From the sequence record MW879344.1: DNA of 64,000 nucleotides; one strand, written 5' to 3'. The notes under the pieces were generated by a model. The model made no database searches. It had not been told where the DNA came from and saw only the letters and a list, made by a program, of their open reading frames with translations. The position numbers and the translations under genes were made by a program. The first letter of the stretch is position 1, and each line of letters begins with the position of its first letter. Positions 3,263 through 42,295 of this stretch are shown here, piece after piece.

Positions 3263-3384
3263 GGCGAGTTAGCTCAGTTGGTAGAGCAGGAAAAAAACCG
3301 ATTCTTGTATTGAATCGTACAGCAAACAATACTATTGCACTTTTAATGCCCTTGTCGGGGGTTCAATTCCCTCACTCGCCACCA
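3263..3384 (+). tRNA. tRNA-Lys(TTT) interrupted by a 46-nt insert (3291-3336) in the anticodon stem
   Basis: Acceptor GGCGAGT/ACTCGCC+ACCA; removing 3291-3336 gives GG|GCA-CT-TTT-AA-TGCCC. Confidence 0.85.
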
Positions 3385-26635: not shown

Positions 26636-26708
26636 GGGGCTATAGCTCAGTAGGGAGAGCGTCTGCTTTGCACGTAGAAGGTCATCGGTTCGATTCCGAT
26701 TAGCTCCA
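26636..26708 (+). tRNA. tRNA-Ala(TGC)
   Basis: GGGGCTA/TAGCTCC with G3-U70; TT-TGC-AC loop. Confidence 0.93.
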
Positions 26709-26906: not shown

Positions 26907-27623
26907 ATGCAAGTACAATTCCAAACCGTTCTATTTGATTCTGAAGATTATCGTTTCGCAGTAGTAGTTGAAGAAACCCTAGTGATTGTAACCTCAAAAG
27001 GTGAAATCGAGCTAGAGTTCGATTCTGAAGCGGAAGCACTAGCAGGTCAGCTAGAACTCGGTGAAGTACTAGATGCTGCTAAAGGTTCTAACATCGCTTC
27101 TGTAATTCAGGACGCTGCTGAAACTGTTTCTGGTCTAGTTTCTGGTCTAGTTTCTGGTCTATTCGGCAAAACTGGTTTCGGTTCAGTTAAATCTAAAGTA
27201 GCTGGTAAAGCTGCTAAAGCAACCGCTGGTATTGATGAGCGTGTAAATGAGTTCCTACGTCAACTTGACGAAGCGATCAAAGGTGCAGAACAAGCTGTTC
27301 CAGCTCGTGCAGATACCCGCCGTGCTTCCACCGCTGAAGCAGAAGATGTATTCGGTACTTCTCGCACTCGTCGTGCAGTAGATGCTGATGCAGTAGTAAG
27401 TACTCTATCTGATGCTGATCTACAAGCAGTTATCAGTACTAAAGCAGACCAACTAATTGCTACTAACCGTCAGGTTCAGGGTCTAGTTGCAAATCTACGC
27501 CGCTTCCATAGCGAAGAAGAAGTGCAAGAAGCTATCGATGCACACAAAGAAATGGTATTCAACGTTGCTCGTGCGAACGATGAACTAACCGTTAACGAAG
27601 TGTTCAATCACCTTCTACGTTAA
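26907..27623 (+). CDS. Ala/Glu-rich protein with strong codon bias
   Basis: GAGG SD; VSGL x3 repeat. Confidence 0.85.
   Translation: MQVQFQTVLFDSEDYRFAVVVEETLVIVTSKGEIELEFDSEAEALAGQLELGEVLDAAKGSNIASVIQDAAETVSGLVSGLVSGLFGKTGFGSVKSKVAGKAAKATAGIDERVNEFLRQLDEAIKGAEQAVPARADTRRASTAEAEDVFGTSRTRRAVDADAVVSTLSDADLQAVISTKADQLIATNRQVQGLVANLRRFHSEEEVQEAIDAHKEMVFNVARANDELTVNEVFNHLLR
27126..27161 (+). repeat. 12-nt tandem repeat x3 (GTTTCTGGTCTA)
   Basis: Direct reading. Confidence 0.9.
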
Positions 27624-27634
27624 TATCCAAAATT

Positions 27635-27657
27635 AAGGCAGCCAATGGCTGCCTTTT
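27635..27657 (+). terminator. intrinsic terminator
   Basis: AAGGCAGCC-AAT-GGCTGCC-TTTT. Confidence 0.8.
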
Positions 27658-27672
27658 GTCATTTGAGGTTAT

Positions 27673-28212
27673 ATGAAAATAACAGAGCAGTACCGAACAC
27701 TAGGTGTTCAAAATTTCTATTCATGTCCTTCTATCCAGAAAACATATCAAAACCCACACGGTCAATTCATCATCGAATGCCTGAATAACTCATTCTATCA
27801 ATACTTCACAGAAAACGCCTCAGTACTCGATCTAGGCTCAGGAAATGGCCTTATCAGTCATGCTCTCAAAACATGTGGAGTCCACAACATTGAAGGTTCA
27901 GACAAATACATGTATGAACGTTATACAGAAGAAACTGGTTTTAAATGCTATCCATATTCATTCGAAGACATTTCCGATTTTAATTGTACGTTTGAAAAAG
28001 AATATGATGTTATCATATGTAGCTATGCATTTGATCTTGTTCCTGAATCATATCGGCAAAAACTGTTATATGCATTAAGTACTTATACCGAAACACTAAT
28101 ACTAATAAGACCTAACTCACATGAGTTGATTTCTGATATATGGAAATTAGAGTATAAAAACAGAACGGGAAAATCTAGAGTTACGATGTATCAAAAAGAA
28201 AGGCACTCATAA
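27673..28212 (+). CDS. class I SAM-dependent methyltransferase-like protein
   Basis: VLDLGSGNG motif I; YDVIICSYAF. Confidence 0.8.
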   Translation: MKITEQYRTLGVQNFYSCPSIQKTYQNPHGQFIIECLNNSFYQYFTENASVLDLGSGNGLISHALKTCGVHNIEGSDKYMYERYTEETGFKCYPYSFEDISDFNCTFEKEYDVIICSYAFDLVPESYRQKLLYALSTYTETLILIRPNSHELISDIWKLEYKNRTGKSRVTMYQKERHS

Positions 28213-28226
28213 GAGTGCCTTTTTTT
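28199..28226. terminator. bidirectional intrinsic terminator
   Basis: AAAGGCACTC-ATAA-GAGTGCC-TTTTTTT between convergent genes. Confidence 0.85.
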
Positions 28227-29358
28227 ATGCCTTACCAGCGATAACAACTTTACCAGCAAAATCTTCATTGCTATATAATGTAATATTATCTGAACTATCT
28301 ACTTCTATTGTTATTGAAACCATTTCAGAACCATCATATACTGAAACGGATGGATTTGATTTATCATGTATACTAAATGGTATTTCCATTTTATATGAAG
28401 AACCATCATCAGACCACACTAAACTAGTACTGAATACTGATAATTGATCCGTTGGTCCAATTATAACAATATCCATATCCTCTGCAACTAATTGAGTTAC
28501 TGAAATGTCACCAGTACTGTTTACATGTACTTCAGGATTATATACTACCCCATTTGGATTTTGAATTTGAACTACCAAATCAGCACCACGATTATGTACA
28601 CTTTCAGGTAATGTATATGTAAATGTTCCATCACCATTATCTACAAATTGTGCAGATGCTACAGGTATATTAGTTACAAAATCAGTATCAGTTCCAGATG
28701 GTAAAACATCAAAAGGTACTGTTGCAGTATTATAATGTGGTGATGTTATTACAATAGTACCTACACCAGTATTTTCAAATACGACATTATCGAAGGTGAA
28801 TACTCTGTTAACTACATTAGTAGTATATATTAAACCTTCTGGTGTAGTTAATGTAACGATCATTCCATCTTCATTTAATGCACCACTAATTGCACTTACC
28901 GAACCAGTTACTGTAGTACTATCAACAGTAACCGTATTAACGATAATAGTTCCTAAGTCTGGAATTGGTATGTCACATTCAGGGGTATACATATCATAAA
29001 GATATGTTCCATCACTCAAAACAACTTTATTAGATAAAAACCGGATTACAAATCCTTGTTCAGATAAAGAATCGTTATAGCCACGAACAAAGAAAGAATT
29101 TTTTGGAATCATATCCAATAAATTATCATCCGATAAACTATAATCGAGTACTCTATTACTTGTGTTATAACCAGTTAATTGTACTTTTTGATACACCATA
29201 TTAGATACGGGATCAATCAAGTCGAACATATGAATAGATCTTTGCTTATATATTCGCATATTTTTTAGCTTAGTCCCATCCTTTAATAATGCTCCACTCA
29301 CAATAAATCCACATACTCCGTATGGATAATCATTTATGCCAGCAATAGGTTTAGCCAT
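28225..29358 (-). CDS. probable virion structural protein (beta-rich, Ig-like)
   Basis: Thr/Val/Ser-rich beta pattern; late-type ATAAATA at 29384-29390 (minus). Confidence 0.6.
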   Translation of the reverse strand: MAKPIAGINDYPYGVCGFIVSGALLKDGTKLKNMRIYKQRSIHMFDLIDPVSNMVYQKVQLTGYNTSNRVLDYSLSDDNLLDMIPKNSFFVRGYNDSLSEQGFVIRFLSNKVVLSDGTYLYDMYTPECDIPIPDLGTIIVNTVTVDSTTVTGSVSAISGALNEDGMIVTLTTPEGLIYTTNVVNRVFTFDNVVFENTGVGTIVITSPHYNTATVPFDVLPSGTDTDFVTNIPVASAQFVDNGDGTFTYTLPESVHNRGADLVVQIQNPNGVVYNPEVHVNSTGDISVTQLVAEDMDIVIIGPTDQLSVFSTSLVWSDDGSSYKMEIPFSIHDKSNPSVSVYDGSEMVSITIEVDSSDNITLYSNEDFAGKVVIAGKA

Positions 29359-29533
29359 ATGTACCCTCCTAGTTATTATCCTGTATTTATTTGATACCGT
29401 ATGATTTTCCTTGACTTTTCCAACTCATTGTAGTATAATCTTTTTGTAATGAGAAACCCTATTGACAGTGATTAATGGGGTTGACATACCATTCATTTAA
29501 TGTATAATGAATGAAAATTAATTGAGGTGATGT

Positions 29534-30112
29534 ATGACACGTTTAATTATCCGTGAAGAAAAAATGAAAATCCGCTTGCATCAAGATGAAGCTGAGTCAT
29601 TTATGGCTAAAGCTGCTGCGAAAGCAGAGAAGTACACCAAGCTTGCACCGGATGGAAAATCACCATATGGTTTCAATCATGCACACTCGCATCTTGTAGG
29701 AATGGCTGCTGAACATGCATCATGGGTTCTTTTTACTGAAATTGAAGAAATGTTAGGAATTGATTTAAAGATTGATCCTGCCTTTCAAGATGAACGCCGT
29801 GAAGGAGAATGTGACCTTTATGTAGGTGGTAAACGTATTGAAGTAAAAGGTATTAAGTACGGTTCATGGTTGCGATTTGGTCCATGTGTAAGTGCTCGTC
29901 AACTTCCAAAAATAAAAAAGAAAGCTGACATTGTACTGTGGGCGTTGTATAATGAACGTTGTCAGGAATTTACATTTGAAGGATACAACTTAGTATCTGA
30001 AATTGAAACTATTCCTACTATCATGACTGGTGCTGAAGGTCGTGAAAAGATTGAAAACTATCCAGTACTAAGCATTATTAAACCACTACAGGAGCTTACA
30101 TTTGATGGTTAG
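29534..30112 (+). CDS. PD-(D/E)XK nuclease-like protein
   Basis: GMAAE...CDLYVGGKRIEVKG. Confidence 0.55.
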   Translation: MTRLIIREEKMKIRLHQDEAESFMAKAAAKAEKYTKLAPDGKSPYGFNHAHSHLVGMAAEHASWVLFTEIEEMLGIDLKIDPAFQDERREGECDLYVGGKRIEVKGIKYGSWLRFGPCVSARQLPKIKKKADIVLWALYNERCQEFTFEGYNLVSEIETIPTIMTGAEGREKIENYPVLSIIKPLQELTFDG

Positions 30113-30299
30113 GGTAACAGTTATTAATAAAAATGACCTATCACGAAAGGATTACACGTTTCTAGTATTACCCCGTAAAGACGAATGGGTAGTACTAGAT
30201 AGTGGAGACTTATTTTCCGTGCATAGTATTGTACATCTATGTTCAGGGGATTCAGAATATAATCCTCCACGAACTGAAATTTATGTAATTCCAGAATAA
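30102..30299 (+). CDS. hypothetical protein
   Basis: ORF. Confidence 0.65.
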   Translation: MMVRVTVINKNDLSRKDYTFLVLPRKDEWVVLDSGDLFSVHSIVHLCSGDSEYNPPRTEIYVIPE

Positions 30300-30305
30300 G
30301 GTAAA

Positions 30306-30623
30306 TTGAAAATGAAAAGTATTGGTATTTTGTTTCTTGTATTAGTGTGTACATTTCTTTACAAAACCGCACATGCAAGTACTGTACCAGTTTATCATAG
30401 TGCGTATTGTTCAGGATACGCATCTAAGATGGCAGCGACATATCGTATGCAGTACTATTACAAAATGCAAAAGTTTTATGATAGTCAAGTTAGTTCTACA
30501 ATTGAACATGATGGTCTACTCAATGAGTACTATCAAAGTGGTTCAGAAGCAGTGAAAGATAATGTATCTATTTCTCATAACTTAAATGATAAGTGTGAGG
30601 AACAATTTAAAAGGAATAAATGA
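30306..30623 (+). CDS. exported hypothetical protein
   Basis: Signal peptide ending AHA. Confidence 0.7.
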   Translation: MKMKSIGILFLVLVCTFLYKTAHASTVPVYHSAYCSGYASKMAATYRMQYYYKMQKFYDSQVSSTIEHDGLLNEYYQSGSEAVKDNVSISHNLNDKCEEQFKRNK

Positions 30624-31105
30624 TGTGGCAAGTAATAGTATTTTTTATTTTGTTCCAAATCTTCTATTCTATAGCTAATAATGCATTTGTGTTTCGTTCA
30701 ATATATGCATTCAAATTGGCTCAGAAATTAGGTTGGAAGTCGTTTTTTAAATTCTATTTCGAATCGTACCTAGTTTATGGTGATGCAATAAATGCATTCG
30801 AACACTTCTTACCAGAAGTAAATGATAGGTTGGAAAAGTTGTTAGCACTAGCATTAAATGGTGAAGCACAGGCAACAATCTCATGGGATCGTTGGGGTGA
30901 ACAGAAATACTTGAACATCCAAGCACCACGGAATTTTGATACTAATAGTAGTTCAATTTCATTCTATTATTTGGTTGGAAAAATTAATAGTAATGAAAAA
31001 TACCTACTATCACCAAGCGTATTTTTCATTGCTAATAAATTGATCAAGAAGTTGGAAGACAAAAAGGCTCAAGAAAAGTTAGATAGTCAAAAACGTACCA
31101 TTTAA
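30620..31105 (+). CDS. membrane-anchored hypothetical protein
   Basis: N-terminal TM. Confidence 0.75.
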   Translation: MMWQVIVFFILFQIFYSIANNAFVFRSIYAFKLAQKLGWKSFFKFYFESYLVYGDAINAFEHFLPEVNDRLEKLLALALNGEAQATISWDRWGEQKYLNIQAPRNFDTNSSSISFYYLVGKINSNEKYLLSPSVFFIANKLIKKLEDKKAQEKLDSQKRTI

Positions 31106-31166
31106 CTTGACTTGTAAAAATGATAGTGTATAATACTTGTATATTAACAAATGTGAGGGTTCCATT

Positions 31167-31667
31167 ATGTCAGCAGTACTAGCAACCAATATGACCAACA
31201 ATATGTCAAACCGTGCAGGTTACCTCACCTTCAATGAAATTATGGATGAAAATTTGATGTACTATACATTCAAAGATTGTATTAAGTACAATAAAGAAGG
31301 ATTCCACAGTTGGATCTGTTATTGGGAAGGTTCACCAATTGCAGTACAATGTACAGTTAAAGCATCAGTACTTGCAAATGGTTTTACAAAGGTCGCAATT
31401 CTATCGAAAGAATTGAAAACTATTGATGAAATTGGTATGTATCCAGCTAAGCAGCATCATTGCTTAGGCCACGTAATTAATGGTCGCTTCTTAAATGAAA
31501 AAGGTGTACAAAGCTTTGTAACTAAATCAATGGTGGATGGTCTACCAGTTGAAGTTGCACAGTCAAATACAGTGCTAAAATCCTCTGACAAGAAAGTTCT
31601 ATCAGCATCTGAGGTAGATCATTTCAAAAAAGTTATGGCAGAAAATTGGGGCTGTACATTCAAATAA
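31167..31667 (+). CDS. hypothetical protein
   Basis: After TTGACT...TATAAT, GAGG SD. Confidence 0.8.
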   Translation: MSAVLATNMTNNMSNRAGYLTFNEIMDENLMYYTFKDCIKYNKEGFHSWICYWEGSPIAVQCTVKASVLANGFTKVAILSKELKTIDEIGMYPAKQHHCLGHVINGRFLNEKGVQSFVTKSMVDGLPVEVAQSNTVLKSSDKKVLSASEVDHFKKVMAENWGCTFK

Positions 31668-31706
31668 TTTGGTTGGGGCGAAAGCCCCATATTTAAATGG
31701 TGACAT

Positions 31707-32153
31707 ATGAAAAAGTCTACAATCTTTACTATAGTGTTCTTACTATTCACAATTGAAGTAGCAATGAGTTTCGCTCAACTAAACAAAACATATCATTTTT
31801 ATGCATATACAATTCAATCCAAGTATGTAGTACTATCTGTTATTTCATACTTGTTGTTCACAGCATTCTCAGGATTATACTTCATGAATATGCCTGATGG
31901 ACAGAATGCTGAACGAACACATTATCTTGAAGTTTATGGTCCAAAGAAGTTTAACCTCCTTTATACCTATCACTTCATTATATTCACCGTAATAATGTTC
32001 CATGTTGGGAATTGGCCTTGGACTATTATGGGTATCCTACTCTTTATGATATGGAACTGGATACGAGTTAAGCAGAATAACTATATTACGGCAGCTAACT
32101 TAGAACAACTCAAAGAAGCTGCAAAGCAAAAACCAACAGTTACATTAGAATGA
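31707..32153 (+). CDS. multi-pass membrane protein
   Basis: Four hydrophobic segments. Confidence 0.75.
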   Translation: MKKSTIFTIVFLLFTIEVAMSFAQLNKTYHFYAYTIQSKYVVLSVISYLLFTAFSGLYFMNMPDGQNAERTHYLEVYGPKKFNLLYTYHFIIFTVIMFHVGNWPWTIMGILLFMIWNWIRVKQNNYITAANLEQLKEAAKQKPTVTLE

Positions 32154-32163
32154 GGATATAATT

Positions 32164-32592
32164 ATGTTTTCGAATATTGTATCTAAATCATTAGCAGTGA
32201 TATATCTTTTTTTAGGAGTATCATTGTATGGAGCATTTGTTGAAATGTTTCAATGGAATACTTATCTAGCAAGCCAATGGTTTATTGTAACTAATGTATT
32301 CATGGCTCTAGTAGTGTTCTGTTCATTTTGTTCAATAATCGCATTGGGTATGGTATATTGTGAAATTGATGCAGAGGCTAAACGTTTTAAAGTACAAATG
32401 TACACACTACTATCAGACAACCTATACAGTTCATTTTGGTATATATTACCATTTATCATAACTGTAGTATGTTTCCAATTAGCTATGTATCTATTCGCTG
32501 GTGGATTTTTGATGATTGGTCTGTGTGTACTAGCATTCTATTTGTTACATAAAAACATTATCAAAAAAGCTACAATTACAGCATTAAAATAA
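32164..32592 (+). CDS. multi-pass membrane protein
   Basis: Four hydrophobic segments. Confidence 0.75.
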   Translation: MFSNIVSKSLAVIYLFLGVSLYGAFVEMFQWNTYLASQWFIVTNVFMALVVFCSFCSIIALGMVYCEIDAEAKRFKVQMYTLLSDNLYSSFWYILPFIITVVCFQLAMYLFAGGFLMIGLCVLAFYLLHKNIIKKATITALK

Positions 32593-32665
32593 TGAAATAC
32601 CAGTTGACAGCGGTCATGTCAACTGGTATAGTACTTGTATATTAAATGAGATGAGAGGCCACAAA

Positions 32666-32914
32666 ATGGAAATCCAACACCTTGTTAACACAGTAAAAGA
32701 GAATGAAATTAAAATCGAAGAACTTCGTCAGTCTATTAAAGATCTGTACGAGGATAACAGTATTCGTTTTTCTGAATCTAAAAATACTGTCACTCCTGAA
32801 ATTCAGGAAAACTATAAAAAAATTGATAGTACTTTTACTGCTAAAGCTAAACTTGAAGCAGAAGTTCGTAGTTTGCAGAAACAAATTCTATCTGTCGTGT
32901 TGGGAGAACAATAA
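32666..32914 (+). CDS. coiled-coil protein
   Basis: Heptad pattern; GAGG SD. Confidence 0.75.
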   Translation: MEIQHLVNTVKENEIKIEELRQSIKDLYEDNSIRFSESKNTVTPEIQENYKKIDSTFTAKAKLEAEVRSLQKQILSVVLGEQ

Positions 32915-33537
32915 TGGCTAAGTATAGTGCTGCTAAAATTGAAGTTGCTCGTAAGTTAAGTACTAGTAAGTATCGTTATTATAGTATCTTTCCAACAGCA
33001 TTATCACAATTAGATCATATCTTTTTTGTGATCGGCAATGGTATTGGTTTCGACCCCAAAGATGGAGTGTACTTCGAAAATCTTAGTATCGAGGATGCCA
33101 AAAAAGAAAGGGCAAATCGTATTATTCGTTGCCATGAACGCATGAAAGAAATGCGTGATATTTTCGGTGAAGGTGGTTCCCGTTTTGATGAAATTTATCA
33201 AGAAGAAATACAAGAACTGGAAAAAGATTTTGAACCAATGCCAGCCAGTTATTATTTTGATGCTGATGCAATGGCAGCAGAACAAATTGCACATAATGAA
33301 ACAGCAAAACATAAAGGACAACCATATCCTGTTTGTGGTTACTCCATCATTATGCATGTTCAACCAGATACAAACAAAACAACGTTAGCATTGGCAATAG
33401 CCTGTACTAAAGGTTGGTTGAAAGTAGTTCAACATGAACTTACTTCTGAACAGAATGACGAACAGAAAGCAGTACTTGAAAAATGGATTGCTTTCTTTAA
33501 TGAAACAATTGAACGTTTGGAGAATAAAAATGCTTAA
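32914..33537 (+). CDS. hypothetical protein
   Basis: ORF coupled to upstream stop. Confidence 0.8.
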   Translation: MAKYSAAKIEVARKLSTSKYRYYSIFPTALSQLDHIFFVIGNGIGFDPKDGVYFENLSIEDAKKERANRIIRCHERMKEMRDIFGEGGSRFDEIYQEEIQELEKDFEPMPASYYFDADAMAAEQIAHNETAKHKGQPYPVCGYSIIMHVQPDTNKTTLALAIACTKGWLKVVQHELTSEQNDEQKAVLEKWIAFFNETIERLENKNA

Positions 33538-33652
33538 ACCATTAATCCTGTTAATTGTAGTACTGGCAGTCGGTATTGGTATCGGCTATAAAATTGGTCA
33601 AAAATCACCATCAGTTGGTGACTGTGTAAATTCTATTATTGGGAGCAACTAA
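33530..33652 (+). CDS. small membrane protein
   Basis: MLKPLILLIVV... after GGAG. Confidence 0.6.
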   Translation: MLKPLILLIVVLAVGIGIGYKIGQKSPSVGDCVNSIIGSN

Positions 33653-34131
33653 TGAACATTAGTACTAATTCGTGGCATTACAAAATGAATGAGTTTGTGT
33701 ATGAGTTCTTGAACAAGAACGTAGCAACCTCACTCTGTGGTTATTTCTGGCAGACTGTGTTTGCTCCGATCATTACTCTAACGTTAGCTATTGTTGGATT
33801 GATTGTCATTTCCATTCTAAGTTGGGGTGCGTTATATCTAGTAGGTGCACTATTCTCTAACTTCTTAGTATGGATCAATGTTCTACCTGAAGCGTTCCAA
33901 CTTGTGAAAAACGTATTCAACTGGCGGTTCATTCCAATGTCAATCCTTTTTGACGTGTTAGTGATTGCAGTGTTCTATGGTAAGTACAAATACTCATCTT
34001 ACAAAGAACGTAAAATTGAAGAAGCTAAAGAAAAAGGTGCTCCGATTGATTCAAAACCACTATTGGTTATTGAGTATATCAAAGCTAAAAAACGTAAAAT
34101 ATGCCCATTGATCAATTTCACTGATGATTAA
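33652..34131 (+). CDS. membrane protein
   Basis: Hydrophobic core, basic tail. Confidence 0.8.
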   Translation: MNISTNSWHYKMNEFVYEFLNKNVATSLCGYFWQTVFAPIITLTLAIVGLIVISILSWGALYLVGALFSNFLVWINVLPEAFQLVKNVFNWRFIPMSILFDVLVIAVFYGKYKYSSYKERKIEEAKEKGAPIDSKPLLVIEYIKAKKRKICPLINFTDD

Positions 34132-34195
34132 TTGTAGTATAGTGCCAGTTAAATCTGGCACATTTTAAGTTAGTTCAATACAACAGGGGGTCATT

Positions 34196-34537
34196 ATGGC
34201 TCTATTCAAAAAAGGAGATGAGGTTTGTTTTGTATATGAAAAACAGATACTTACCGGAATCGTAAAAACTATTGGTTTATTGATTGGTATTAAAGTACAA
34301 TCAGGAGAAGTACTGTACGCATCAGAACAGTACGTTGCACCAATAGATGCAAAATTTTGTGTAGTTGAAACAGATCCAGAATATTCTAATTATTCTAAGA
34401 TTCGTTTAGATTACACTACTTATACCACAAGAAACAAAACATGGAATAATTGGAGTAATCAATCCTCTTGGATAAAAGAATCATTTGATCCAGTTGAACT
34501 ATGTTTAAAAACAACTGTCTATGGACTGGAGATATAA
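34196..34537 (+). CDS. hypothetical protein
   Basis: ORF. Confidence 0.75.
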   Translation: MALFKKGDEVCFVYEKQILTGIVKTIGLLIGIKVQSGEVLYASEQYVAPIDAKFCVVETDPEYSNYSKIRLDYTTYTTRNKTWNNWSNQSSWIKESFDPVELCLKTTVYGLEI

Positions 34538-34809
34538 TGGTTTACATTTTTAGCATTAACTTAACACCAGATGATGACTACTATGATTTTCTTGTAAGTA
34601 TTGTCCAAGAAGATTATTTCAAAGAACATGGCTGTCTAAATGATAAACATCTTGAGGATGAACTGTTTGATAGCATCCCTGATTTTTATGAAATCATGGA
34701 AAGTGTTTTTGAAACTGAATTATCATTATCTTCAGCACGTTCTGCATTAATTAATGCAGGGTTAATTGAAAGTACTGATCTTCATTCATTTATTGAATCA
34801 TGTAAGTAA
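34537..34809 (+). CDS. acidic hypothetical protein
   Basis: ATG 34537 after GGAG. Confidence 0.75.
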   Translation: MVYIFSINLTPDDDYYDFLVSIVQEDYFKEHGCLNDKHLEDELFDSIPDFYEIMESVFETELSLSSARSALINAGLIESTDLHSFIESCK

Positions 34810-34819
34810 GGGGTTATAT

Positions 34820-35365
34820 ATGTCTTTTAAAACTGGTCAGTGGATTGTATTAAAAGATCCTGATAATTTCAGCAAAGCTCACGGACAGAATGAAGAAATT
34901 GCTCGTGCTATTAATGGAGAAGCTATCAAAATTACGGTTATGGATCGTGATGGAGATGTACGCCGTTTTGTTAATGCTGATGGTAATCAGTTTGATATGG
35001 GACTATATCGTGCTGAACTTGAACGTTTTTTTGAACCGTTCGACAAGACTGAAGTATTTGGTAAGTTTAAATTGATTATTACTTATATTGAGAATGGTAA
35101 AACACTGGAAGAAGAAGGTGTTACGAACATTGAACTTACACATGATACAGTATCTTACAAATACAACCGTAAGAAAATGGGATTTTTAACCTATAAAGGT
35201 GAAGTTTCATTGAAGATCGATGAACTGAAGCAAATCACAGTCAGTACTCCAGCATCTGAACGTGTGTTTCACATCGAAAATGGTGTTGTAATTCGTGAGC
35301 ATATCATGTATGATAATAATCGTAAGTTTAAGAAATTCTCATTAAGGAGTAAAGGTGACAACTAA
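34820..35365 (+). CDS. hypothetical protein
   Basis: ATG 34820 after AGGGG. Confidence 0.8.
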   Translation: MSFKTGQWIVLKDPDNFSKAHGQNEEIARAINGEAIKITVMDRDGDVRRFVNADGNQFDMGLYRAELERFFEPFDKTEVFGKFKLIITYIENGKTLEEEGVTNIELTHDTVSYKYNRKKMGFLTYKGEVSLKIDELKQITVSTPASERVFHIENGVVIREHIMYDNNRKFKKFSLRSKGDN

Positions 35366-35499
35366 TTCATGGTGGGTTCGTTTTAAGAAAAAAATGAATG
35401 AACCTGTAACAATGTATCATTTTCATATAGCTATGGCATTCCTTATAGGGTACTTCGCAGCCACTATGGTCATGATAATTTTAATGTTGGGACGTTAAT

Positions 35500-35817
35500 A
35501 TGAGCAAATTCTTTGTTGTTCGGGTACAAACTAATTCTGATTATAACCATATCCGCATGGATAAATGGAATACGCCAGTACGAACCAATATATTTTCGGA
35601 ATGTACTAATTTTGAAAGCAAAGAATCTGCTCTAGCAATGATAGAGAAGTTCATGCTGGTTAGTACTTTCTATCCTCATGAAGTACTATGTTGTGATTTA
35701 GAAAATAATCCACCAGTATCTGTGGTGGCGATTTGTACATTTGTAAAGAAAAACAATGGTAAATTCGGATTACATGTACAGGATTTAACTGTTGGGGCAA
35801 GCCATCGATCAAGCTAA
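35500..35817 (+). CDS. hypothetical protein
   Basis: ORF. Confidence 0.7.
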   Translation: MSKFFVVRVQTNSDYNHIRMDKWNTPVRTNIFSECTNFESKESALAMIEKFMLVSTFYPHEVLCCDLENNPPVSVVAICTFVKKNNGKFGLHVQDLTVGASHRSS

Positions 35818-35896
35818 AAAATGTTTAAAATGGCTTGACAACAATGGAATTCAATGATATAGTACTTGTCATAATTTGCTTATTAAGAGGTTTAAT

Positions 35897-36307
35897 ATGG
35901 CATCAGCTTTAATCAATAAACTTTCTGAAAAAAATAAGTACGATGAACTCGACCCACGATTAAATCGTATCATGTTTTTAATCGATATTTTCAAAGAACG
36001 TGAAGAAAAGTATCGTGAAGTTATTAAAGTTCGTAAAAATCAAGAACGTGCGTTTGAATTAAGTAATTCTAAACGGCAAAACTATTCAGTAGTTTATACT
36101 GAACATACCGTTTTCGGTCGTACTATGAAGTTATGTGATAGTACTGAGGGTGATTTGGAATATAAACTGATTGAATTTGGTCGTAAGATTTCAAAGATCA
36201 TCAGTGCTACACCGGAAATGGTTCAAAATGAAAAGGTTGCAAGCTTCCTTTATAATATGGAATTCAAGTCAAACGAATATAAAAACAAGCATCAATATGA
36301 TCATTAA
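35897..36307 (+). CDS. hypothetical protein
   Basis: After TTGACA promoter, GAGG SD. Confidence 0.8.
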   Translation: MASALINKLSEKNKYDELDPRLNRIMFLIDIFKEREEKYREVIKVRKNQERAFELSNSKRQNYSVVYTEHTVFGRTMKLCDSTEGDLEYKLIEFGRKISKIISATPEMVQNEKVASFLYNMEFKSNEYKNKHQYDH

Positions 36308-36321
36308 ATAAAAAAAAAGAC

Positions 36322-36444
36322 TTGACACCACCGTTCATTATGATATACTGAACAGGCTAAGAAGGAAGTTCACCACGAAGCCATACCGAGGCTTCAAAAT
36401 AAAATAAAATAGTACTTGACAGACGAAACGCTAGATGGTACTAT
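36322..36444 (+). promoter_or_regulatory. two sigma70-type promoters
   Basis: TTGACA...TATACT (36322-36349) and TTGACA-N17-TACTAT (36416-36444). Confidence 0.75.
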
Positions 36445-36450
36445 GTAGTC

Positions 36451-37385
36451 TCTAAAGAAGACATACGATTAACTAGAAAGAGGATTGAACGCAAATGTAA
36501 CAGTTTAACTATAATCTTTTATAATATAACCTAGTCGAATCTAAAAAATTTATTCAGCAGTAACCGTTGCAGGGTGGAATGTCTCTACTCTGACAAACAA
36601 TGAGGGATACGATCATGAAGTAATTTAAACACTTTAAACATCGATCTTAAATATTGCCTGAGTTAAAGTGCAGTACGGGACGGCGATAAGCAAAGTTGCC
36701 TTCTACTATGATCTGCATGACTACATTGCAAATGAACGTGTATCCAATGAAAGGATACAAGTGGAGAGGAAACCGATTCACGTGGTACAACCAGTAATCG
36801 GCAGAGAATCGTTGAAGCTGTTCATGTTGACTTCGCCATTCAAAGTAATGGCAAGCTACTTAGTACTGGAAGTATATTTTGTCGTATCATCACATTATAG
36901 GGGACATGAAGCCCGTATAATGGGGGTTACGCGGGGATTGCCAGCAGGATTAAGTAGACAATATGAGGGAAACACTACTAACTGAACACGGTTAGATGAA
37001 GTCAATGAAGTGACTTTCCCCTGATACGTCAGTGGGTTCCGGTAGACGCAGGCCGGAGAGTGTTTCAAACAAGTGCAAGTTGTACAGCGTAGGTACAACA
37101 CCCTTTCGAGGGAAGCTGTGAGAAGCGGCACTTGTCGAACATCCCGAACGATGTTCACACAAAGACTTGCAGTACTACGAAGTTTAATGCTATAATCAGT
37201 TCGGTGAGGACTAGCATTAAGCGATTTCAACGCCCCTACGGTACGTACCATAATGTCGTACCTGTTCTGTGGCAGAGCATATCCGACTAGCTTAGAACTA
37301 GATGCTCAATTACCTACAAGGGTCAACCCAAGTGAGGTAAAGATGTTTCGGATTCCAACCCGCCGGAGGTGTTCCGGCAACTTTT
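36451..37385 (+). ncRNA. candidate large structured ncRNA (~930 nt)
   Basis: Promoter-led, GC-richer than flanks, more than 10 hairpins, terminal GCCGGA/TCCGGC hairpin then T-tract. Confidence 0.7.
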
Positions 37386-37400
37386 AATTTAGAGGTAGTT

Positions 37401-37868
37401 ATGTTTACAAACTTCCGTTATATTCGTTGGGACCGAGTTTTTTCATATATCATTCTTCCGTTTTTGTGCTGTTTAATCTTATATTTTCTTTGGATGTTTT
37501 TCACATCAATAACAAAGATACGTGAAAATTACATCAATCGTACTGAAACTTTTCACATAACAGCAAATGTTGTTAAAATAAAATATGATGAAGTTTATAC
37601 TGCTCGTCATAATAAACGCCGACATACCTATTATCCAGTACTGGTAGAAGATTCAAATGGTGTACAATATCAATACACATTTGATACTCGTACAAATGAT
37701 AACTGGAGTCCATCAATTGGTACACAAGTTTATAAAGATTGTTGGACAGAAGTTGATGGTAAAAAGTTGTGCAGTGAATATTGGAATGAAGATTTTGAGT
37801 ATGTAAAAACTAAAAAACAGCTTGACACCAACCGCCCAAGTAGTGTATCATCTAAATCAATCAATTAA
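37401..37868 (+). CDS. membrane-anchored hypothetical protein
   Basis: GAGG SD, N-terminal TM. Confidence 0.8.
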   Translation: MFTNFRYIRWDRVFSYIILPFLCCLILYFLWMFFTSITKIRENYINRTETFHITANVVKIKYDEVYTARHNKRRHTYYPVLVEDSNGVQYQYTFDTRTNDNWSPSIGTQVYKDCWTEVDGKKLCSEYWNEDFEYVKTKKQLDTNRPSSVSSKSIN

Positions 37869-38057
37869 GTGAGGTAATTATCATGAAAGAATATATTGTA
37901 GAGTACTTTTTACCAAAAAGTTCAATTCCTTTAGCAACTCGTCAATTCGCACATTCCGAAGCAAATGCACGAAGTGCTGCTAAAGCAGAAAAGGGACAGG
38001 ATATAATTATTCGTAGCACCCGCCTTGCATAATAACTATTAAGTAAGTAAAATTGAG

Positions 38058-38083
38058 AAAAAGCCAGTTAACGCTGGCTTTTT
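38058..38083 (+). terminator. intrinsic terminator
   Basis: AAAAAGCCAG-TTAACG-CTGGCTTTTT. Confidence 0.8.
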
Positions 38084-38127
38084 CTGTTGGATAAAATCAA
38101 TTGTTGTAATTTTGTACGGAGAAAAAT

Positions 38128-39120
38128 GTGAGCATCAAAAAGCTAAACTTAGATGAAATTCAGGATGAGATTCTAGATGAGTGTTTTAACAGTGAAGATA
38201 AAACACTTGACTCGTTAGTTGTCGATGAAGATGATTTCGAAGTAGAAAGTACCGAAGAAGTTATCGATACTGGTCTAACTATGGATAAGATTAAATCCAA
38301 AGTAAAAACAGAGCAGTACATCAGTAATGAAGTTTTAGTTCGTAATGTACAGAATAATATTGATGTTGAACGTTCAAAAGAACTTCTAATCATGTTCAAC
38401 AGTGGCTTAGTGTATAACGAAGCAAAGAACTGTACTTGTAACATTCCGTTCCAAGATAAAGTACAATACGGTTTTGAAGGATTAATGAAAGCTATCTATG
38501 GTTTCAATACAAACTTCAAAACAATGTTCAGTACTTATGCAACTACCGCGATCCGTCAACATATGTACCGAAACGGAAACAACGATGTGCGTATGGTAGC
38601 GTTACCAGAGCATCTATCAATGCACAATATCCGCATCCAGAGCTTCATTGAGAAGACCATGCAGGACAGTACTGGCTACCCTACGCACGAACAGATCTCA
38701 GAGGGTACGGGCATTGACATTCGTTCAGTGAAGCGTATAATGAACTACAACAGCAACACATTCAGCATCGACACCCCAATGAATCGCGGTGGGGATGAAG
38801 GGTCACAACAGACTCTAAAAGATATGATTCCTGGTGAAAGTGGGGATTACATCGTAGATGAACGTTGTGTAAGTAAAGACTTCCTAAGCACAATGGAAGA
38901 TATTATGAATGAACTAGAAGAACATGAACGTGTATTGTTAGGTTTAGTTCATGGTTTAGATGGTTATCGTATTCATACATTTGATGAAATTATTAGTACT
39001 GGATATATCGACAGTACTGGTAAGTATGTTTCATCTAAAGCAACATTATCTCGCCGTTATAGTGCTGTGATGGATAAAGTACGCCGCATTGTTGAACGTA
39101 AACAAATCAGTTTTGACTAA
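38128..39120 (+). CDS. sigma70-family RNA polymerase sigma factor
   Basis: Region 2 NSGLV..EAK, GLMKAI..F..FSTYATTAIR; region 3 PTHEQI, SIDTP; region 4-like LEEHER...TFDEI. Confidence 0.85.
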   Translation: MSIKKLNLDEIQDEILDECFNSEDKTLDSLVVDEDDFEVESTEEVIDTGLTMDKIKSKVKTEQYISNEVLVRNVQNNIDVERSKELLIMFNSGLVYNEAKNCTCNIPFQDKVQYGFEGLMKAIYGFNTNFKTMFSTYATTAIRQHMYRNGNNDVRMVALPEHLSMHNIRIQSFIEKTMQDSTGYPTHEQISEGTGIDIRSVKRIMNYNSNTFSIDTPMNRGGDEGSQQTLKDMIPGESGDYIVDERCVSKDFLSTMEDIMNELEEHERVLLGLVHGLDGYRIHTFDEIISTGYIDSTGKYVSSKATLSRRYSAVMDKVRRIVERKQISFD

Positions 39121-39132
39121 GAGAGGTTATGC

Positions 39133-39570
39133 ATGTTTTTAGATTGTCCTGATATTCTTTCAGATAAAATGATTGACAATAATGAATTAGTTCATATTGT
39201 AATTAAACAAAAACGAAATCGTAAGTTGCCACAAGAACAACGAAGTGTTTTGACTAAAGCATATAGCCGTTATGTTAAAAAATTACATAAACGTCAGGCT
39301 GAAGTACTGAAGAAAAAAGAACAAAGTAAGGCACAAAAGTATAATTCTGCACGTCCACACGGTTTTCGTTATCGTTCTGCAAAAGAAATTTCAGAATTGA
39401 TGATTAAAAATCCTGTAGTACTGGCTAAAGCAAAAACTTATCTAAGTAAGAAAGTTCGTTCTCGTGCTACAGACACATTTTTGCAAAAAATGGATTCAGC
39501 CTTAGCATTATATTGTGCAAAAACTGGTGATGTAAAAATCAAATATAAGTTGGATATTCTAAATCCATAA
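39133..39570 (+). CDS. basic hypothetical protein
   Basis: GAGG SD, Lys/Arg-rich. Confidence 0.8.
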   Translation: MFLDCPDILSDKMIDNNELVHIVIKQKRNRKLPQEQRSVLTKAYSRYVKKLHKRQAEVLKKKEQSKAQKYNSARPHGFRYRSAKEISELMIKNPVVLAKAKTYLSKKVRSRATDTFLQKMDSALALYCAKTGDVKIKYKLDILNP

Positions 39571-39581
39571 GGGTTATAATA

Positions 39582-40289
39582 ATGTCACATAAAGATAAAC
39601 GTTCTGTAAGTACTGATGCGTTAGATACGCTTGGTACTATTCATACACGCGATGAACATCGTGATGCAATCCATCTTGGAGTAGAACCAGTTATTGCTGG
39701 TGAAGATATTGCAGTTGGTGCTAATATTGGTATTGGGACTGATGGTAAAGCATATGCTACTGATTTCCGTTCAGATATTAAAGCTGTAGGTATTTCTGAT
39801 CCATTCCTACGCAATCGTATCAATGAAGGAGAAAGTTTCTGGTTAGTTGTATATCCACGTAAGATTACATCACTTCGTCATGTGTGGTCACATCCAGACT
39901 TTGATTCAGATGAACCAGTACTAGATATTTCTTCACTAAGTTCAGAAGAAATTATGGCTGAAGTACAAAAACGTTTAGTACAATCATCTACTCCACCAGT
40001 ACAATCATCTGCTGCACCAGAACTCGATGAAAGTCTTCGTATTGCGGAAGCATTTACATGGATTGACAATTATGCCGACAACTTAGGCTTAAATGTTGAG
40101 GAACTAATTGATTATGCTGATTCATGGGTGAACTCTCAAAAACGTGGAAGTTTTGGTGAGTACTTATGTAAAGGTGGATTACTAGAAGGTGAATGGGTAT
40201 CTGATGAGTTTTGGGATAACTATGATGTATATCGTAGTACTAAAACTTTAGATGAACATCGTGGTTCCTTCTTTACATGTTCATGTTAA
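39582..40289 (+). CDS. hypothetical protein
   Basis: ORF. Confidence 0.85.
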   Translation: MSHKDKRSVSTDALDTLGTIHTRDEHRDAIHLGVEPVIAGEDIAVGANIGIGTDGKAYATDFRSDIKAVGISDPFLRNRINEGESFWLVVYPRKITSLRHVWSHPDFDSDEPVLDISSLSSEEIMAEVQKRLVQSSTPPVQSSAAPELDESLRIAEAFTWIDNYADNLGLNVEELIDYADSWVNSQKRGSFGEYLCKGGLLEGEWVSDEFWDNYDVYRSTKTLDEHRGSFFTCSC

Positions 40290-40487
40290 AGGTATAATAT
40301 GAATAAAACATTATCTCCAGTATCAAAGATAATTGATTTACACTTGATGCCAGTTAAGAACTTGAATCAAGGAACCGGTAAGTTAGGTTTAGAGAATCAC
40401 AAAACTGAAACTATCATTGATACTACCAAAATGACTTCTGATGAAAAGAATGAATATCTGAAGAAGTTTAATAAATGAGGCAATAAT

Positions 40488-40706
40488 ATGAAAATCTTTA
40501 TTGCATTTATTGTATGTGTAATTTTAATATTCAGTATTTTGATTACAGTAATAGATCATAAACCAAAAATTACAGCATACGAATCTCAAGAAAGTACTGA
40601 GCAAAAGAAAGAAGATGAAGATGATTGTACCTATACGATGTGTAATTCATTCGGTGGTGGTATTGCTGGTGATACACTAGCAATCGGATTTATGTTCGGG
40701 GATTAA
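40488..40706 (+). CDS. small exported/membrane protein
   Basis: GAGG SD, N-terminal TM. Confidence 0.7.
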   Translation: MKIFIAFIVCVILIFSILITVIDHKPKITAYESQESTEQKKEDEDDCTYTMCNSFGGGIAGDTLAIGFMFGD

Positions 40707-40949
40707 TATGGAAAAAGAAAAAGAACGTATTGGATTAGTTGTAAGTATTAGTGTAGTACTTAAATTAAATCCAATACAGACTCAAGTTCAAAGCTTTATG
40801 TTTGAAGATATTGAAAAAGGTCGTGAGTTTGCGAAAAAACATACTACTTTGAGTACACAATTAATTGCAATTATTTAAAAAAAGGGTTGACTTCGGTCAG
40901 CCCTTTTTTGTACAATATGTATTATAAAAAATAAATCGAGATATTACTA

Positions 40950-41384
40950 ATGACACGTATAAACTTAGTGCACGTAAAAGAACTTTCAGACCAACATTTA
41001 ATGGCAGAATATCGTGAATTACCACGTGTATTCGGTGCAGTTCAGAAGCATATTGCTGCTGGTAAGAAGATTAAAGATTTTAAAATCAACCAAACTTATA
41101 TTCTTGGTACTGGTCATGTAACGTTCTTCTATGATAAATTGTTATTCTTATCATTACGACATGAACAAATAGTACTTGAATGTTTAAAACGTGGAATAAA
41201 AATTAGTAATATTGATAAGTATGATGTTTCTAATTTTCCTCCTGTGTGGTGTAATGATTATATTCCAACAGAAGCAGAAATAAGTATTTCACGTGCTCGT
41301 TTGATTGAAAAATTAAAAATGAAACCTTCTTGGTACAGGTTCAGTACTGATTCAGTTCCTAAGTATTTTGAAGATATGCTATAA
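40950..41384 (+). CDS. denV: pyrimidine-dimer DNA glycosylase / endonuclease V
   Basis: MTRINL...[15 protein letters not shown]...[13 protein letters not shown]. Confidence 0.95.
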
Positions 41385-41447
41385 CTTTGACTTTTTCTCA
41401 GTACGGGTAACTATACTAATTCCTGTTAGAAAAACAGTAGGTGTATA

Positions 41448-41630
41448 TTGATAAGTCAATATCTGGTAGAACACCTGAAAGAAAAAAGTTTTAAAATTGT
41501 CAATTATGATAATAGTGAAGTTGTGGTAAAAGGTAAAGCATTTCTTTCAAGGGCTGAAAAGTTTTTGGATAAAGTGAAAGATCCTCGTTACAGTACGAAT
41601 AAGAAAAACAATCTGATTATAGGTGGTTAA
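41448..41630 (+). CDS. hypothetical protein
   Basis: Short ORF with AGGTG SD. Confidence 0.5.
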   Translation: MISQYLVEHLKEKSFKIVNYDNSEVVVKGKAFLSRAEKFLDKVKDPRYSTNKKNNLIIGG

Positions 41631-41697
41631 TTAAATGAAACCACGAATTTTTTTATGGTATAATGGTGTATAGAAAGTATTATTTTAAAGGTAGCTT

Positions 41698-42295
41698 ATG
41701 ATCTACGGTATTGCAACGTATGATTCAATGATACCTACAACAAAACATCCATTATACAAAACATGGCATAATATGTTAAAACGCTGTTATTCTGCGAAAT
41801 ATCAGGAACAGCGTCCAACATATAAAGGAACTACAGTTTCTGATGAATGGCTACTATTTTCAAATTTTGAAAAATGGTGTGATTGCAAATTTATAGTTGG
41901 TTATGTTTTGGATAAGGATTTTATTGCAGGTGATTTGAAAATCTATTCACCCAAAACCTGTGCATTCATACCAAAGGAACTAAACACCTCAATTTTAGAA
42001 AGAGATTATAGTTCAGCATATCCATTAGGAGTAAGTTTAATCACTCAAAAAAAATGGTATTGCTTTTTCATCTAGAATTTCGATGTTTGGAAAAGAAAAA
42101 CATTTAGGAAATCGAGAATCAGAAAAAGATGCACATAAGTTATGGCAAATAGCTAAAAAAGATTATTTCATTAAACTTCTTGAAATTCATAAACAATTAG
42201 ATGATAATGTTTTAGATGGATTACGACGAAGGATTTCTATATTAGAAAATGATATAGAAAATGATCTGATAACAAAAAGTATTAATAAAGTATAA
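41698..42295 (+). pseudogene. HNH-type homing endonuclease split by a frameshift in an A8 run (42047-42054)
   Basis: HPLYKTWHNMLKRCY...LDKD...YSPKTCAFIP; deleting one A fuses it to FGKEKHLG... Confidence 0.7.

Follow-up and report, generated by a model that had tools for sequence, protein, structure and literature searches.

The window analysed here is a 64,000-nucleotide (nt) stretch of sequence record MW879344.1, given on one strand, and the element under study is an RNA region which occupies a protein-gene-free gap of 1.1 kb within it (36308-37400). Positions 36300-37400 of the window are 100% identical to positions 330349-331449 of MW879344.1, the genome of Erwinia phage pEa_SNUABM_49 (pEa49), a 358-kb Eneladusvirus in the RaK2/GAP32 group of jumbo phages. 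The predicted primary transcript is a structured RNA of about 940 nt (36448-37389; + strand, as are all features of the RNA given below). In every member the RNA precedes a protein of 48-51 amino acids (aa) and a phage sigma70-family factor, both codirectional with it, and in most an HTH_37 regulator comes directly after the RNA. Homologous gaps free of coding sequence (CDS) occur in BF, a Serratia phage, and in a further six phages of Erwinia, all 98-100% identical. More distant gaps, with 68-74% identity in patches, are present in phages Yen9-03 and Yen9-04 (host Yersinia), CBB (Pectobacterium), GAP32 (Cronobacter), XbC2 (Xanthomonas) and Kaldavass (Erwinia). The RNA region is non-coding, and over most of its length strong selection has acted on the secondary structure of the + strand RNA.

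Two near-consensus promoters precede the RNA, as had been reported in the first-pass annotation of the window. P1 (36322-36349; TTGACA-16-TATACT) is an 11/12 match to sigma70 with an A-tract upstream, and it is kept in BF, CBB, GAP32, Kaldavass and XbC2 (alignment A1). P2 (36416-36444; TTGACA-17-TACTAT) is a TG-extended 10/12 match with a UP-like AAAAAGTAC tract; its -35 and -10 columns are invariant across 8/8 aligned phages, and P2 is likely the main start of the RNA. Both ends of the transcript were placed from promoter and hairpin positions, and a transcript from P1 would reach about 1030 nt. At the predicted 3' end, a hairpin and tail (37362-37389) resemble an intrinsic terminator, with GCCGGA/UCCGGC (37362-37378) followed by AACUUUUAAUUU. 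The sequence of this terminal stem differs, with compensatory changes, in BF, Yen9-04, CBB and the L030 locus, while the hairpin and the invariant U-rich tail persist in all of them. These limits agree with the interval 36451-37385 that had been proposed from the letters alone. The enrichment in guanine plus cytosine (G+C) noticed at that time was also confirmed, with a G+C content of 0.45-0.48 over 36750-37349 compared to 0.31-0.35 in the flanks.

The region folds with a minimum free energy (MFE) of -282 kcal/mol, far below that of shuffled sequence; with 20 shuffles per strand, z is -5.5 for the + strand and a weaker -3.6 for the - strand. The best-supported part is domain D3 (36965-37227), which comprises 260 nt. 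It is built of a five-way junction (36969-37066), a three-way junction with an invariant AGCGUAG-type loop and a UUCG loop (37069-37135), a hairpin with a CCGAAC loop (37137-37156), an invariant single strand (37165-37181) and a last helix that carries TGCTATAAT (37182-37222). Based on an alignment of 12 sequences (A3), the consensus calculated by RNAalifold contains 65 pairs in 11 helices, and compensatory double changes are found in 34 of the pairs. By an independent count, 97.6% of the D3 cells are paired, compared to 36-47% when the partners are slid by 1-3 columns. The same sliding lowers the number of compensated pairs from 34 to 3-7, and the observed covariation was reached by 0/500 shuffles. 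The ratio of G-U to A-C is 71:4, which indicates that the + strand is the functional one. Additionally, a 12-nt insertion in BF (TGATACGTAAGT) falls in a D3 hairpin loop, a place where RNA tolerates change.

All helices that the first-pass annotation had listed are present in the sequence, and all of them occur in the MFE fold or in the constrained fold. Covariation among homologues was found for AAGTGC/GCACTT, TTGTAC/GTACAA, CCCT-TTCG-AGGG, GAACATC/GATGTTC, TTAATGCTA/TAGCATTAA, GTATCC/GGATAC, CCGATT/AATCGG, GCCATT/AATGGC and GAGCAT/ATGCTC. For TTACCT/AGGTAA the helix is kept, but its changes are one-sided and of the G-U type alone.

The invariant D3 stretch at 37165-37198 consists of TTG[CA]AGTACT[AG]CGAAGTT, 6 nt and TG[CT]TATAAT, and it looks like a sigma70 promoter. 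The TG[C/T]TATAAT element, a perfect extended -10, lies in the last helix in 11/12 sequences, and only its free 'n' position covaries. A promoter would have no need of an invariant 'spacer', yet the one in this stretch does not vary either. In Yen9-03 the G of the extended -10 is lost and the pairing partner changes as well, suggesting that RNA pairing is the dominant constraint on the TGnTATAAT of D3. A separate likeness was seen between the start of the P1 transcript (36347-36362, ACTGAACAGGCTAAGA) and the first D3 hairpin (36981-36996, ACTGAACACGGTTAGA), and it recurs in CBB; it may be accidental or the remnant of an internal duplication.

The 5' part of the RNA begins with a terminal hairpin (36448-36462, GUCU/AGAC), and 5' leader hairpins vary by lineage. 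An invariant 24-nt block follows (36480-36503), composed of a GAGG resembling a Shine-Dalgarno (SD) sequence, an 11-nt spacer and AUG-UAA (36495-36500). This GAGG, 11 nt, AUG-UAA arrangement is found in 15 lineages, over which three positions of the block vary, the third (CAG to CGG) only in the phage XaC1. In all members, the short forms L033 and XaC1 included, the block sits 30-80 nt past a sigma70 promoter. It is single-copy in the window, and a pattern scan of 185,579 bacterial and archaeal genomes found none. The distance between the SD-like element and AUG is 11 nt, compared to 5-8 nt at the two neighbouring genes checked. The spacer itself is invariant, and ribosome binding alone is insufficient as an explanation for this. 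In the RNAalifold consensus, the 3' half of the block (36491-36498) may pair with 36723-36729, an ACA(N0-2)UUGC strand directly 5' of the D2 helix. Such a candidate helix would close D1 as a domain; both of its strands are invariant, which is consistent with pairing.

Between the block and D3 the RNA is more variable in content. Domain D1 (36504-36722) consists of variable modules with a conserved TCATGAAGTAATT strand (36612-36626), and it is replaced or expanded in Mimasvirus-type genomes. The core of D2 (36723-36852) is a long-range helix (36732-36738/36819-36825) drawn around two hairpins (36740-36758 and 36773-36801), and a third, covarying hairpin lies downstream of that helix (36835-36852). 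The long-range helix reads ATGAAC/GTTCAT in 12 sequences and AAGAAC/GTTCTT in the CBB lineage, a compensatory change. The stems of the D2 hairpins differ in sequence with their pairing preserved, while differences among near-identical phages in the 36740-36758 hairpin are one-sided or fall in the loop. D2b (36853-36964) is an extended irregular hairpin domain in its Eneladusvirus form. In Mimasvirus-type genomes another module of about 230-300 nt stands between D2 and D3, with 59 pairs, 8 of them compensated, and a consensus energy of -55 kcal/mol. Domain D4 (37228-37355) contains hairpins at 37240-37262, 37275-37307 and 37310-37340 and a conserved GGUAAAGAUGUUUCGG strand, and a compensatory change from GAGCA/TGCTC to GGGAA/TTCCC was detected in it. 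In CBB, Kaldavass and XbC2-type members, D4 also holds a sigma70 promoter upstream of the 3' hairpin, matching 12/12 in CBB (L002 3363-3391) and 11/12 in the same columns of Kaldavass, XbC2, L010, L032 and L015. Transcripts from this promoter would carry the hairpin and U-tract in the 5' untranslated region (UTR) of the HTH gene, where they must be read through. With this internal promoter, the hairpin cannot be an efficient terminator in CBB-type genomes. The 3' hairpin is probably a leaky end, and must be so in several relatives, so that the RNA may also serve as a very long 5' leader.

The open reading frames (ORFs) that overlap the region had been doubted as genes in the first-pass annotation, and the comparison with relatives bears this out. 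All six frames are interrupted many times in pEa49 and in 13 homologues, and none of the ORFs is conserved. The longest + strand ORF is annotated in GenBank as pEaSNUABM49_00542 (36668-36985, 105 aa, GTG start, hypothetical protein). In BF, which is 98% identical, this ORF is already broken or shortened, and Pfam gave no match for it. Codon-type conservation, which would have spoken for a protein, was looked for between pEa49 and six relatives and was not found, since all three codon positions are hit about equally by substitutions (p = 0.53-0.98). As a control, substitutions in the sigma gene 750 nt downstream are concentrated at third positions (p <= 2e-19). CDS calls within the region differ in strand and frame between genomes, as seen in BF (BF_0505, L008 3097-3465), GAP32 (GAP32_487A, L004 2296-2463) and Kaldavass (six ORFs, L005 2436-3686), while the CBB and XbC2 records have no CDS annotated over 1.2-1.6 kb of it. 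All of these calls, pEaSNUABM49_00542 included, are probably spurious, and such hypothetical-protein annotations should give way to an ncRNA (non-coding RNA) feature.

Comparison with known RNAs was negative throughout. Scanning of the window with Rfam 15 (4227 families) returned only transfer RNAs (tRNAs), and no family matched the region, including GOLLD, ROOL, group I and II introns, RNase P, tmRNA and 6S. Between 36200 and 37600, at an expectation value (E) of up to 10, nothing credible appeared; the three matches were to eukaryotic small nucleolar RNA or microRNA models on the - strand at E 5-8. The XbC2 and CBB homologues gave no Rfam match at E<=1, and the short-form loci gave none at gathering thresholds. 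ARAGORN found neither tRNA nor tmRNA in the region, and no tRNA in 27000-42000. As to a group I or II intron, the flanking ORFs are complete unrelated genes, and all relatives share the gap; neither an intron-less allele nor a split host gene was seen. Also, no description of this RNA was found in the searchable literature on jumbo-phage transcriptomes, in large-RNA surveys, in a catalogue of phage candidate structured RNAs (whose motifs average 67 nt) or in two 2026 intergenic-mining preprints. By every membership test that could be run, the RNA falls outside the known families considered. Taken together with the non-coding status and the selection on + strand structure, these negative results favour the earlier suggestion of a possibly new large RNA class.

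Several known systems nevertheless offer partial likenesses. GOLLD and ROOL, known from phages, prophages and bacteria, are RNAs of large size and ornate structure that are represented by Rfam families and often lie beside tRNA genes. The present RNA is similarly phage-borne and richer in G+C than its surroundings, within their range of 0.6-1 kb, and it shares with them many covarying helices, multi-way junctions and the absence of a protein product. It differs from them in that their covariance models do not match it and that no tRNA lies within 9.7 kb of it, the closest being an upstream one with its end at 26708. Moreover, its module content varies among close relatives, it is tied to the invariant 5' block and to the sigma locus, and its hosts are Enterobacterales, plus Xanthomonas as recorded. 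GOLLD and ROOL were resolved by cryo-electron microscopy as RNA-only multimeric cages (bioRxiv 10.1101/2024.12.08.627333). The Pseudomonas jumbo phage PA5oct has two ORF-free ncRNAs of 236-451 nt, ncRNA001 and ncRNA002, which are strongly expressed from early in infection and account for 2-5% of phage reads (PMC7318152). They likewise represent ORF-free, unannotated RNA in a distantly related jumbo phage. Unlike the present RNA, they are encoded in the terminal repeat, and the blastn matches to the present RNA do not include PA5oct, a comparison made by sequence alone.

Two further likenesses concern parts of the RNA. 6S RNA is an open-promoter mimic that sequesters the sigma70 holoenzyme. In the present case an association with sigma70 RNA polymerase (RNAP) is suggested by context, namely the phage sigma factor, a Gp2- or epsilon-like small protein described below, and the TGnTATAAT of D3 at a helix/loop boundary, which may function either within the RNA as a motif or as a genuine promoter in the DNA. 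The RNA differs from 6S in having no Rfam 6S match, in being five times larger and in being built of multi-way junctions, not as a long rod with a central bubble. An early RNA of the Bacillus phage SP82 has an SD-like polypurine 5' stabiliser, and start-stop mini-ORFs occur in E. coli. The 5' block resembles both, in that its SD-like GAGG and AUG-UAA lie close to the start of an early phage RNA that is untranslated over the rest of its length, but the 11-nt spacing and the invariant spacer set it apart.

The family extends over Eneladusvirus, Mimasvirus, Kaldavass and XaC1, and DNA-pattern scans added six contigs from metagenomes. Its size differs widely, from about 170 nt in XaC1 (the block and one hairpin, then a 93-aa ORF; L036 3430-3650) and about 320-380 nt in the metagenomic L033 (non-coding, L033 330-824) to about 520 nt in Yen9-03, 575 nt in L030, 670 nt in Yen9-04, 940 nt in pEa49, 1000 nt in CBB and GAP32 and 1100-1250 nt in the XbC2 type. 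The differences correspond to whole modules. Compared to the near-identical Yen9-04 (L003), Yen9-03 (L007) shows a clean loss of about 150 nt, the 5' half of D2, and is a natural deletion mutant. L030 has D2 and, according to the D3 covariance model, no D3; XaC1 is without D2 and D3, and L033 is without D3 and has at most a weak D2-like stretch. From these sequence comparisons, the RNA appears as a modular family of about 170-1250 nt with gain and loss of whole modules, rather than as one fixed 930-nt fold.

Outside this clade the RNA was not detected. The D3 covariance model (R1) found no second copy in the window and none in the sigma loci of phages 7t3, Hallingskeid, 121Q and RaK2 or in L030 and L033. 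Wider relatives were sought by two viral-contig scans for the block and one for the D3 motif, by one metagenome scan and by one genome scan, and only this clade was returned; L034, a G+C-rich bacterial contig, was rejected as a chance match to the pattern scan. In 7t3, 121Q and RaK2 no such gap is present upstream of sigma. Directly downstream of sigma, CDS-free gaps of 722 nt in 121Q (L018 5973-6694) and 370 nt in RaK2 (L019 5898-6266) were observed. The 121Q gap starts with a terminator hairpin followed by a promoter-like TTTGTGATATAAT, has an MFE z of -3.4, and gave no match to Rfam or to the D3 model. These gaps may harbour an ncRNA of another kind, as yet unannotated, next to sigma in Asteriusvirus and Alcyoneusvirus.

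Downstream of the RNA in pEa49, the HTH_37 slot is filled by a 155-aa ORF (37401-37868) with a hydrophobic, membrane-like N-terminal segment, for which no match was found in Pfam or PHROG. Because BF lacks it, this ORF appears to have been inserted in some pEa_SNUABM phages only. Next comes a conserved basic protein of 49 aa (37883-38032, + strand; phrog_36312), which always stands between the RNA and the sigma gene. AlphaFold predicts a beta-beta-alpha-beta fold for it with a predicted local distance difference test score of 93. Its top full-length fold match in PDB is the T7 RNAP inhibitor Gp2, a weak one (template-modelling scores 0.77/0.74, E 0.6), and it also weakly resembles RNAP epsilon (YkzG) and ribosomal protein eL20/LX, with fold matches at E 0.3-3. 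Gp2 is acidic whereas the 49-aa protein is basic, and the fold is common among small phage proteins; a sequence-level link to Gp2 was dropped, a PDB profile search having given nothing meaningful. The protein, which in BF would be co-transcribed with the RNA, could be an RNAP-binding or RNA-binding partner. Synteny at the locus is anchored by the sigma70-family factor (38128-39120, + strand; Pfam Sigma70_r2/r3). Its gene is separated from the 49-aa ORF by a strong terminator hairpin of 12 pairs (38056-38085) that looks bidirectional and is present in BF too; the sigma gene therefore requires its own promoter or anti-termination. Elsewhere in the window, 22 tRNA genes lie on the + strand (3263-26708), one of which, of 119 nt (3263-3381), may hold an insertion or intron.

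A number of other ideas about the RNA were tried and dropped. Mimicry of, or antisense to, ribosomal RNA (rRNA) was considered, as the block shares a 10-mer with 16S nt 27-36 and D3 has a 13-nt identity (37176-37188, TACGAAGTTTAAT) with the E. coli rrnB pre-16S leader (L037 327-340), which makes the D3 motif complementary over 12 base pairs to the pre-16S 3' trailer. Such 10-mers occur at the chance rate (3 in 23S, about 2.6 expected), and the alignment of the 5' 115 nt with the rrnB leader is no better than that of shuffles, about 10% of which reach it. The trailer site occurs in Enterobacter, Klebsiella, Citrobacter, Leclercia and Shigella, and in none of the Erwinia, Serratia, Yersinia and Pectobacterium loci among those listed (80 of 107). 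A host origin was rejected, as a blastn comparison with 5,426 E. coli genomes and 72,556 plasmids showed no similarity. ToxI-like, other tandem or dispersed repeats were absent beyond the duplicated promoter. A CsrB-like GGA sponge was not supported either, with about 13 GGA per 935 nt by hand count, close to the expectation from composition. A sarcin-ricin-like reading of AGUACUACGAAG failed on Yen9 variants without the bulged G and on unpaired flanks. Long-range AGUACU pairing between D2b and D3 (36861-68/37170-77) is not kept in Yen9-04 and the Mimas group, and a D2-D3 pseudoknot GACUUCG/CGAAGUU is broken in GAP32 and without a partner in the Yen9 phages.

Considering the above, the region is read as a previously undescribed family of long, modular, structured ncRNA in one clade of the RaK2/GAP32-like jumbo phages, acting in trans as a scaffold or decoy with leaky read-through; we regard the chances of this reading as about even. 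In the proposed sequence of events, host RNAP would make the RNA abundantly in the first minutes of infection, and the transcript would fold during transcription into independent modules D1-D4 behind the 5' block. Early, strong expression is plausible, considering the tandem 10-11/12 promoters with UP-like tracts, the ncRNA levels in PA5oct (PMC7318152) and the assignment of this region in CBB to an early block transcribed by host RNAP from RpoD-like promoters with UP elements (PMC5259590). Most transcripts would end at, or be cut near, the 3' hairpin and U-tract, giving a stable RNA of about 0.9 kb. The released RNA would then act in trans as a protein-binding scaffold or decoy for host takeover, and the neighbouring genes suggest transcription or translation factors as the likeliest partners. 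A minority of read-through transcripts would supply the mRNA of the downstream takeover genes. The SD-like/AUG-UAA block would probably serve as a 5' stabiliser that binds ribosomes or another factor, and also as one strand of the helix closing D1.

Action in trans is preferred because the size, multi-way junctions and invariant loops of the RNA exceed those of known cis-leaders, and because pEa49 keeps the full RNA even though a promoter at 37822-37851 serves the 49-aa ORF and the sigma gene. The comparison with trans-acting RNAs draws on OLE, GOLLD, ROOL and RNase P. A narrower form, tentatively held and somewhat short of an even chance, is that of a ribonucleoprotein scaffold or decoy which catches the host transcription or translation machinery, is made first in infection, has grown by module accretion on the leader of the sigma operon, and possibly forms a GOLLD/ROOL-like particle. 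Its target could be sigma70 RNAP, captured through the TGnTATAAT fork of D3, or ribosomes, captured through the SD/AUG-UAA block.

Certain points weigh against the trans-acting scaffold or decoy. Its role in trans is suggested by size, complexity and neighbourhood, and the module losses in Yen9-03 and L030 indicate that no single large fold is essential. The long-range pairing of the block shows one-sided changes only, without true covariation. The alignment represents about 6 deep lineages, and the covariation statistics are below R-scape-level rigour. Other points fit an action in cis as well. In BF nothing fills the HTH slot, and the 49-aa ORF begins about 20 nt past the U-tract of the RNA with no promoter found between the 3' hairpin and that ORF, so that RNA of the BF type is physically its 5' UTR. 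In CBB the HTH gene begins about 30 nt past the U-tract, and the CBB-type promoter upstream of the 3' hairpin fits a cis-acting leader just as well.

These observations form the basis of the best surviving rival, in which the RNA is a giant cis-acting 5' leader or attenuator of the operon of HTH, 49-aa and sigma genes, with the 3' hairpin and U-tract as a conditional terminator or processing site. The hairpin and tail are kept even downstream of the internal 12/12 promoter of CBB. Hallingskeid has a promoter, a 48-aa homologue, sigma and a short leader only; the RNA looks as if this leader had been expanded in one lineage, structured modules being added to it. In XaC1 the block stands in a leader of about 170 nt before an ORF. 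Known bacterial leaders and riboswitches, however, are several-fold smaller and simpler, and no Rfam aptamer matches the region. The search for a conserved anti-terminator pairing found none, the one candidate (UUUCGG/CCGGA) being absent in CBB, and pEa49 has a separate promoter at 37822-37851 for the 49-aa and sigma genes, yet the full RNA is kept. A cis-acting role is considered less likely than action in trans, but it is the main rival.

A poorer candidate is a long precursor from which nucleases such as RNase E/G or RNase III would release several stable modules, each acting on its own as a small structured RNA. The gain and loss of whole modules between close relatives and the AU-rich single-stranded linkers separating the domains agree with it, but the modules would be tied together by predicted long-range helices, namely ATGAAC/GTTCAT and the pairing of the block to bases 5' of D2, and elements that are tRNA-like or could serve as RNase P substrates are absent; we consider such processing improbable.

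Still less credible is selection at the level of DNA, either for an origin with an R-loop primer transcript, as known from ColE1 RNA II and the T4 origins, or for a promoter cluster. Strong promoters stand before an untranslated structured transcript, promoter-like sites are enriched in the homologous regions (13 vs 5.1+-2.0 in CBB and 10 vs 3.6+-1.7 in L030), and TGnTATAAT is conserved inside D3. Against this, compensation that tolerates G-U reflects selection on RNA and not on DNA hairpins, and helices occur far from the promoter-like sites. In Yen9-03 the loss from the extended -10 TG is accompanied by the change of the pairing partner, and neither a GC-skew shift nor iterons or repeats beyond the promoters were found at the locus. 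An element of this kind is very improbable. That the RNA belongs, in divergent form, to a known family of large RNAs (GOLLD, ROOL, group I/II, RNase P, tmRNA or 6S), or is a protein gene as in GenBank, can practically be set aside, for the GOLLD/ROOL-like size and the CDS calls in pEa49, BF, GAP32 and Kaldavass are outweighed by the empty Rfam (E<=10 in the window, E<=1 for XbC2 and CBB) and ARAGORN searches, the lack of a split host gene, ORFs that vary in strand and frame without codon periodicity, and the 1.2-1.6 kb without CDS calls in CBB and XbC2.

Large ornate ncRNAs are, to our knowledge, very rare, and RNase P, group II introns, OLE, GOLLD, ROOL and omega RNAs each brought new biochemistry. 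The sequence evidence presents this RNA as a testable candidate for a class of large viral RNAs not described before, carried by jumbo phages that can be cultivated, among them phages of Erwinia, Serratia, Yersinia, Pectobacterium and Cronobacter. For GOLLD and ROOL, direct functional testing has been hard so far; these phages grow on ordinary laboratory hosts, so that the function of the RNA is directly testable. The natural variants, from Yen9-03, L030, L033 and XaC1 to the 1.25-kb XbC2 form, amount to an evolutionary dissection and present an RNA growing by module accretion. We know of no explanation of host transcription takeover so far other than by proteins, and the fixed position of the RNA before the phage sigma gene suggests that this takeover may have an RNA component.

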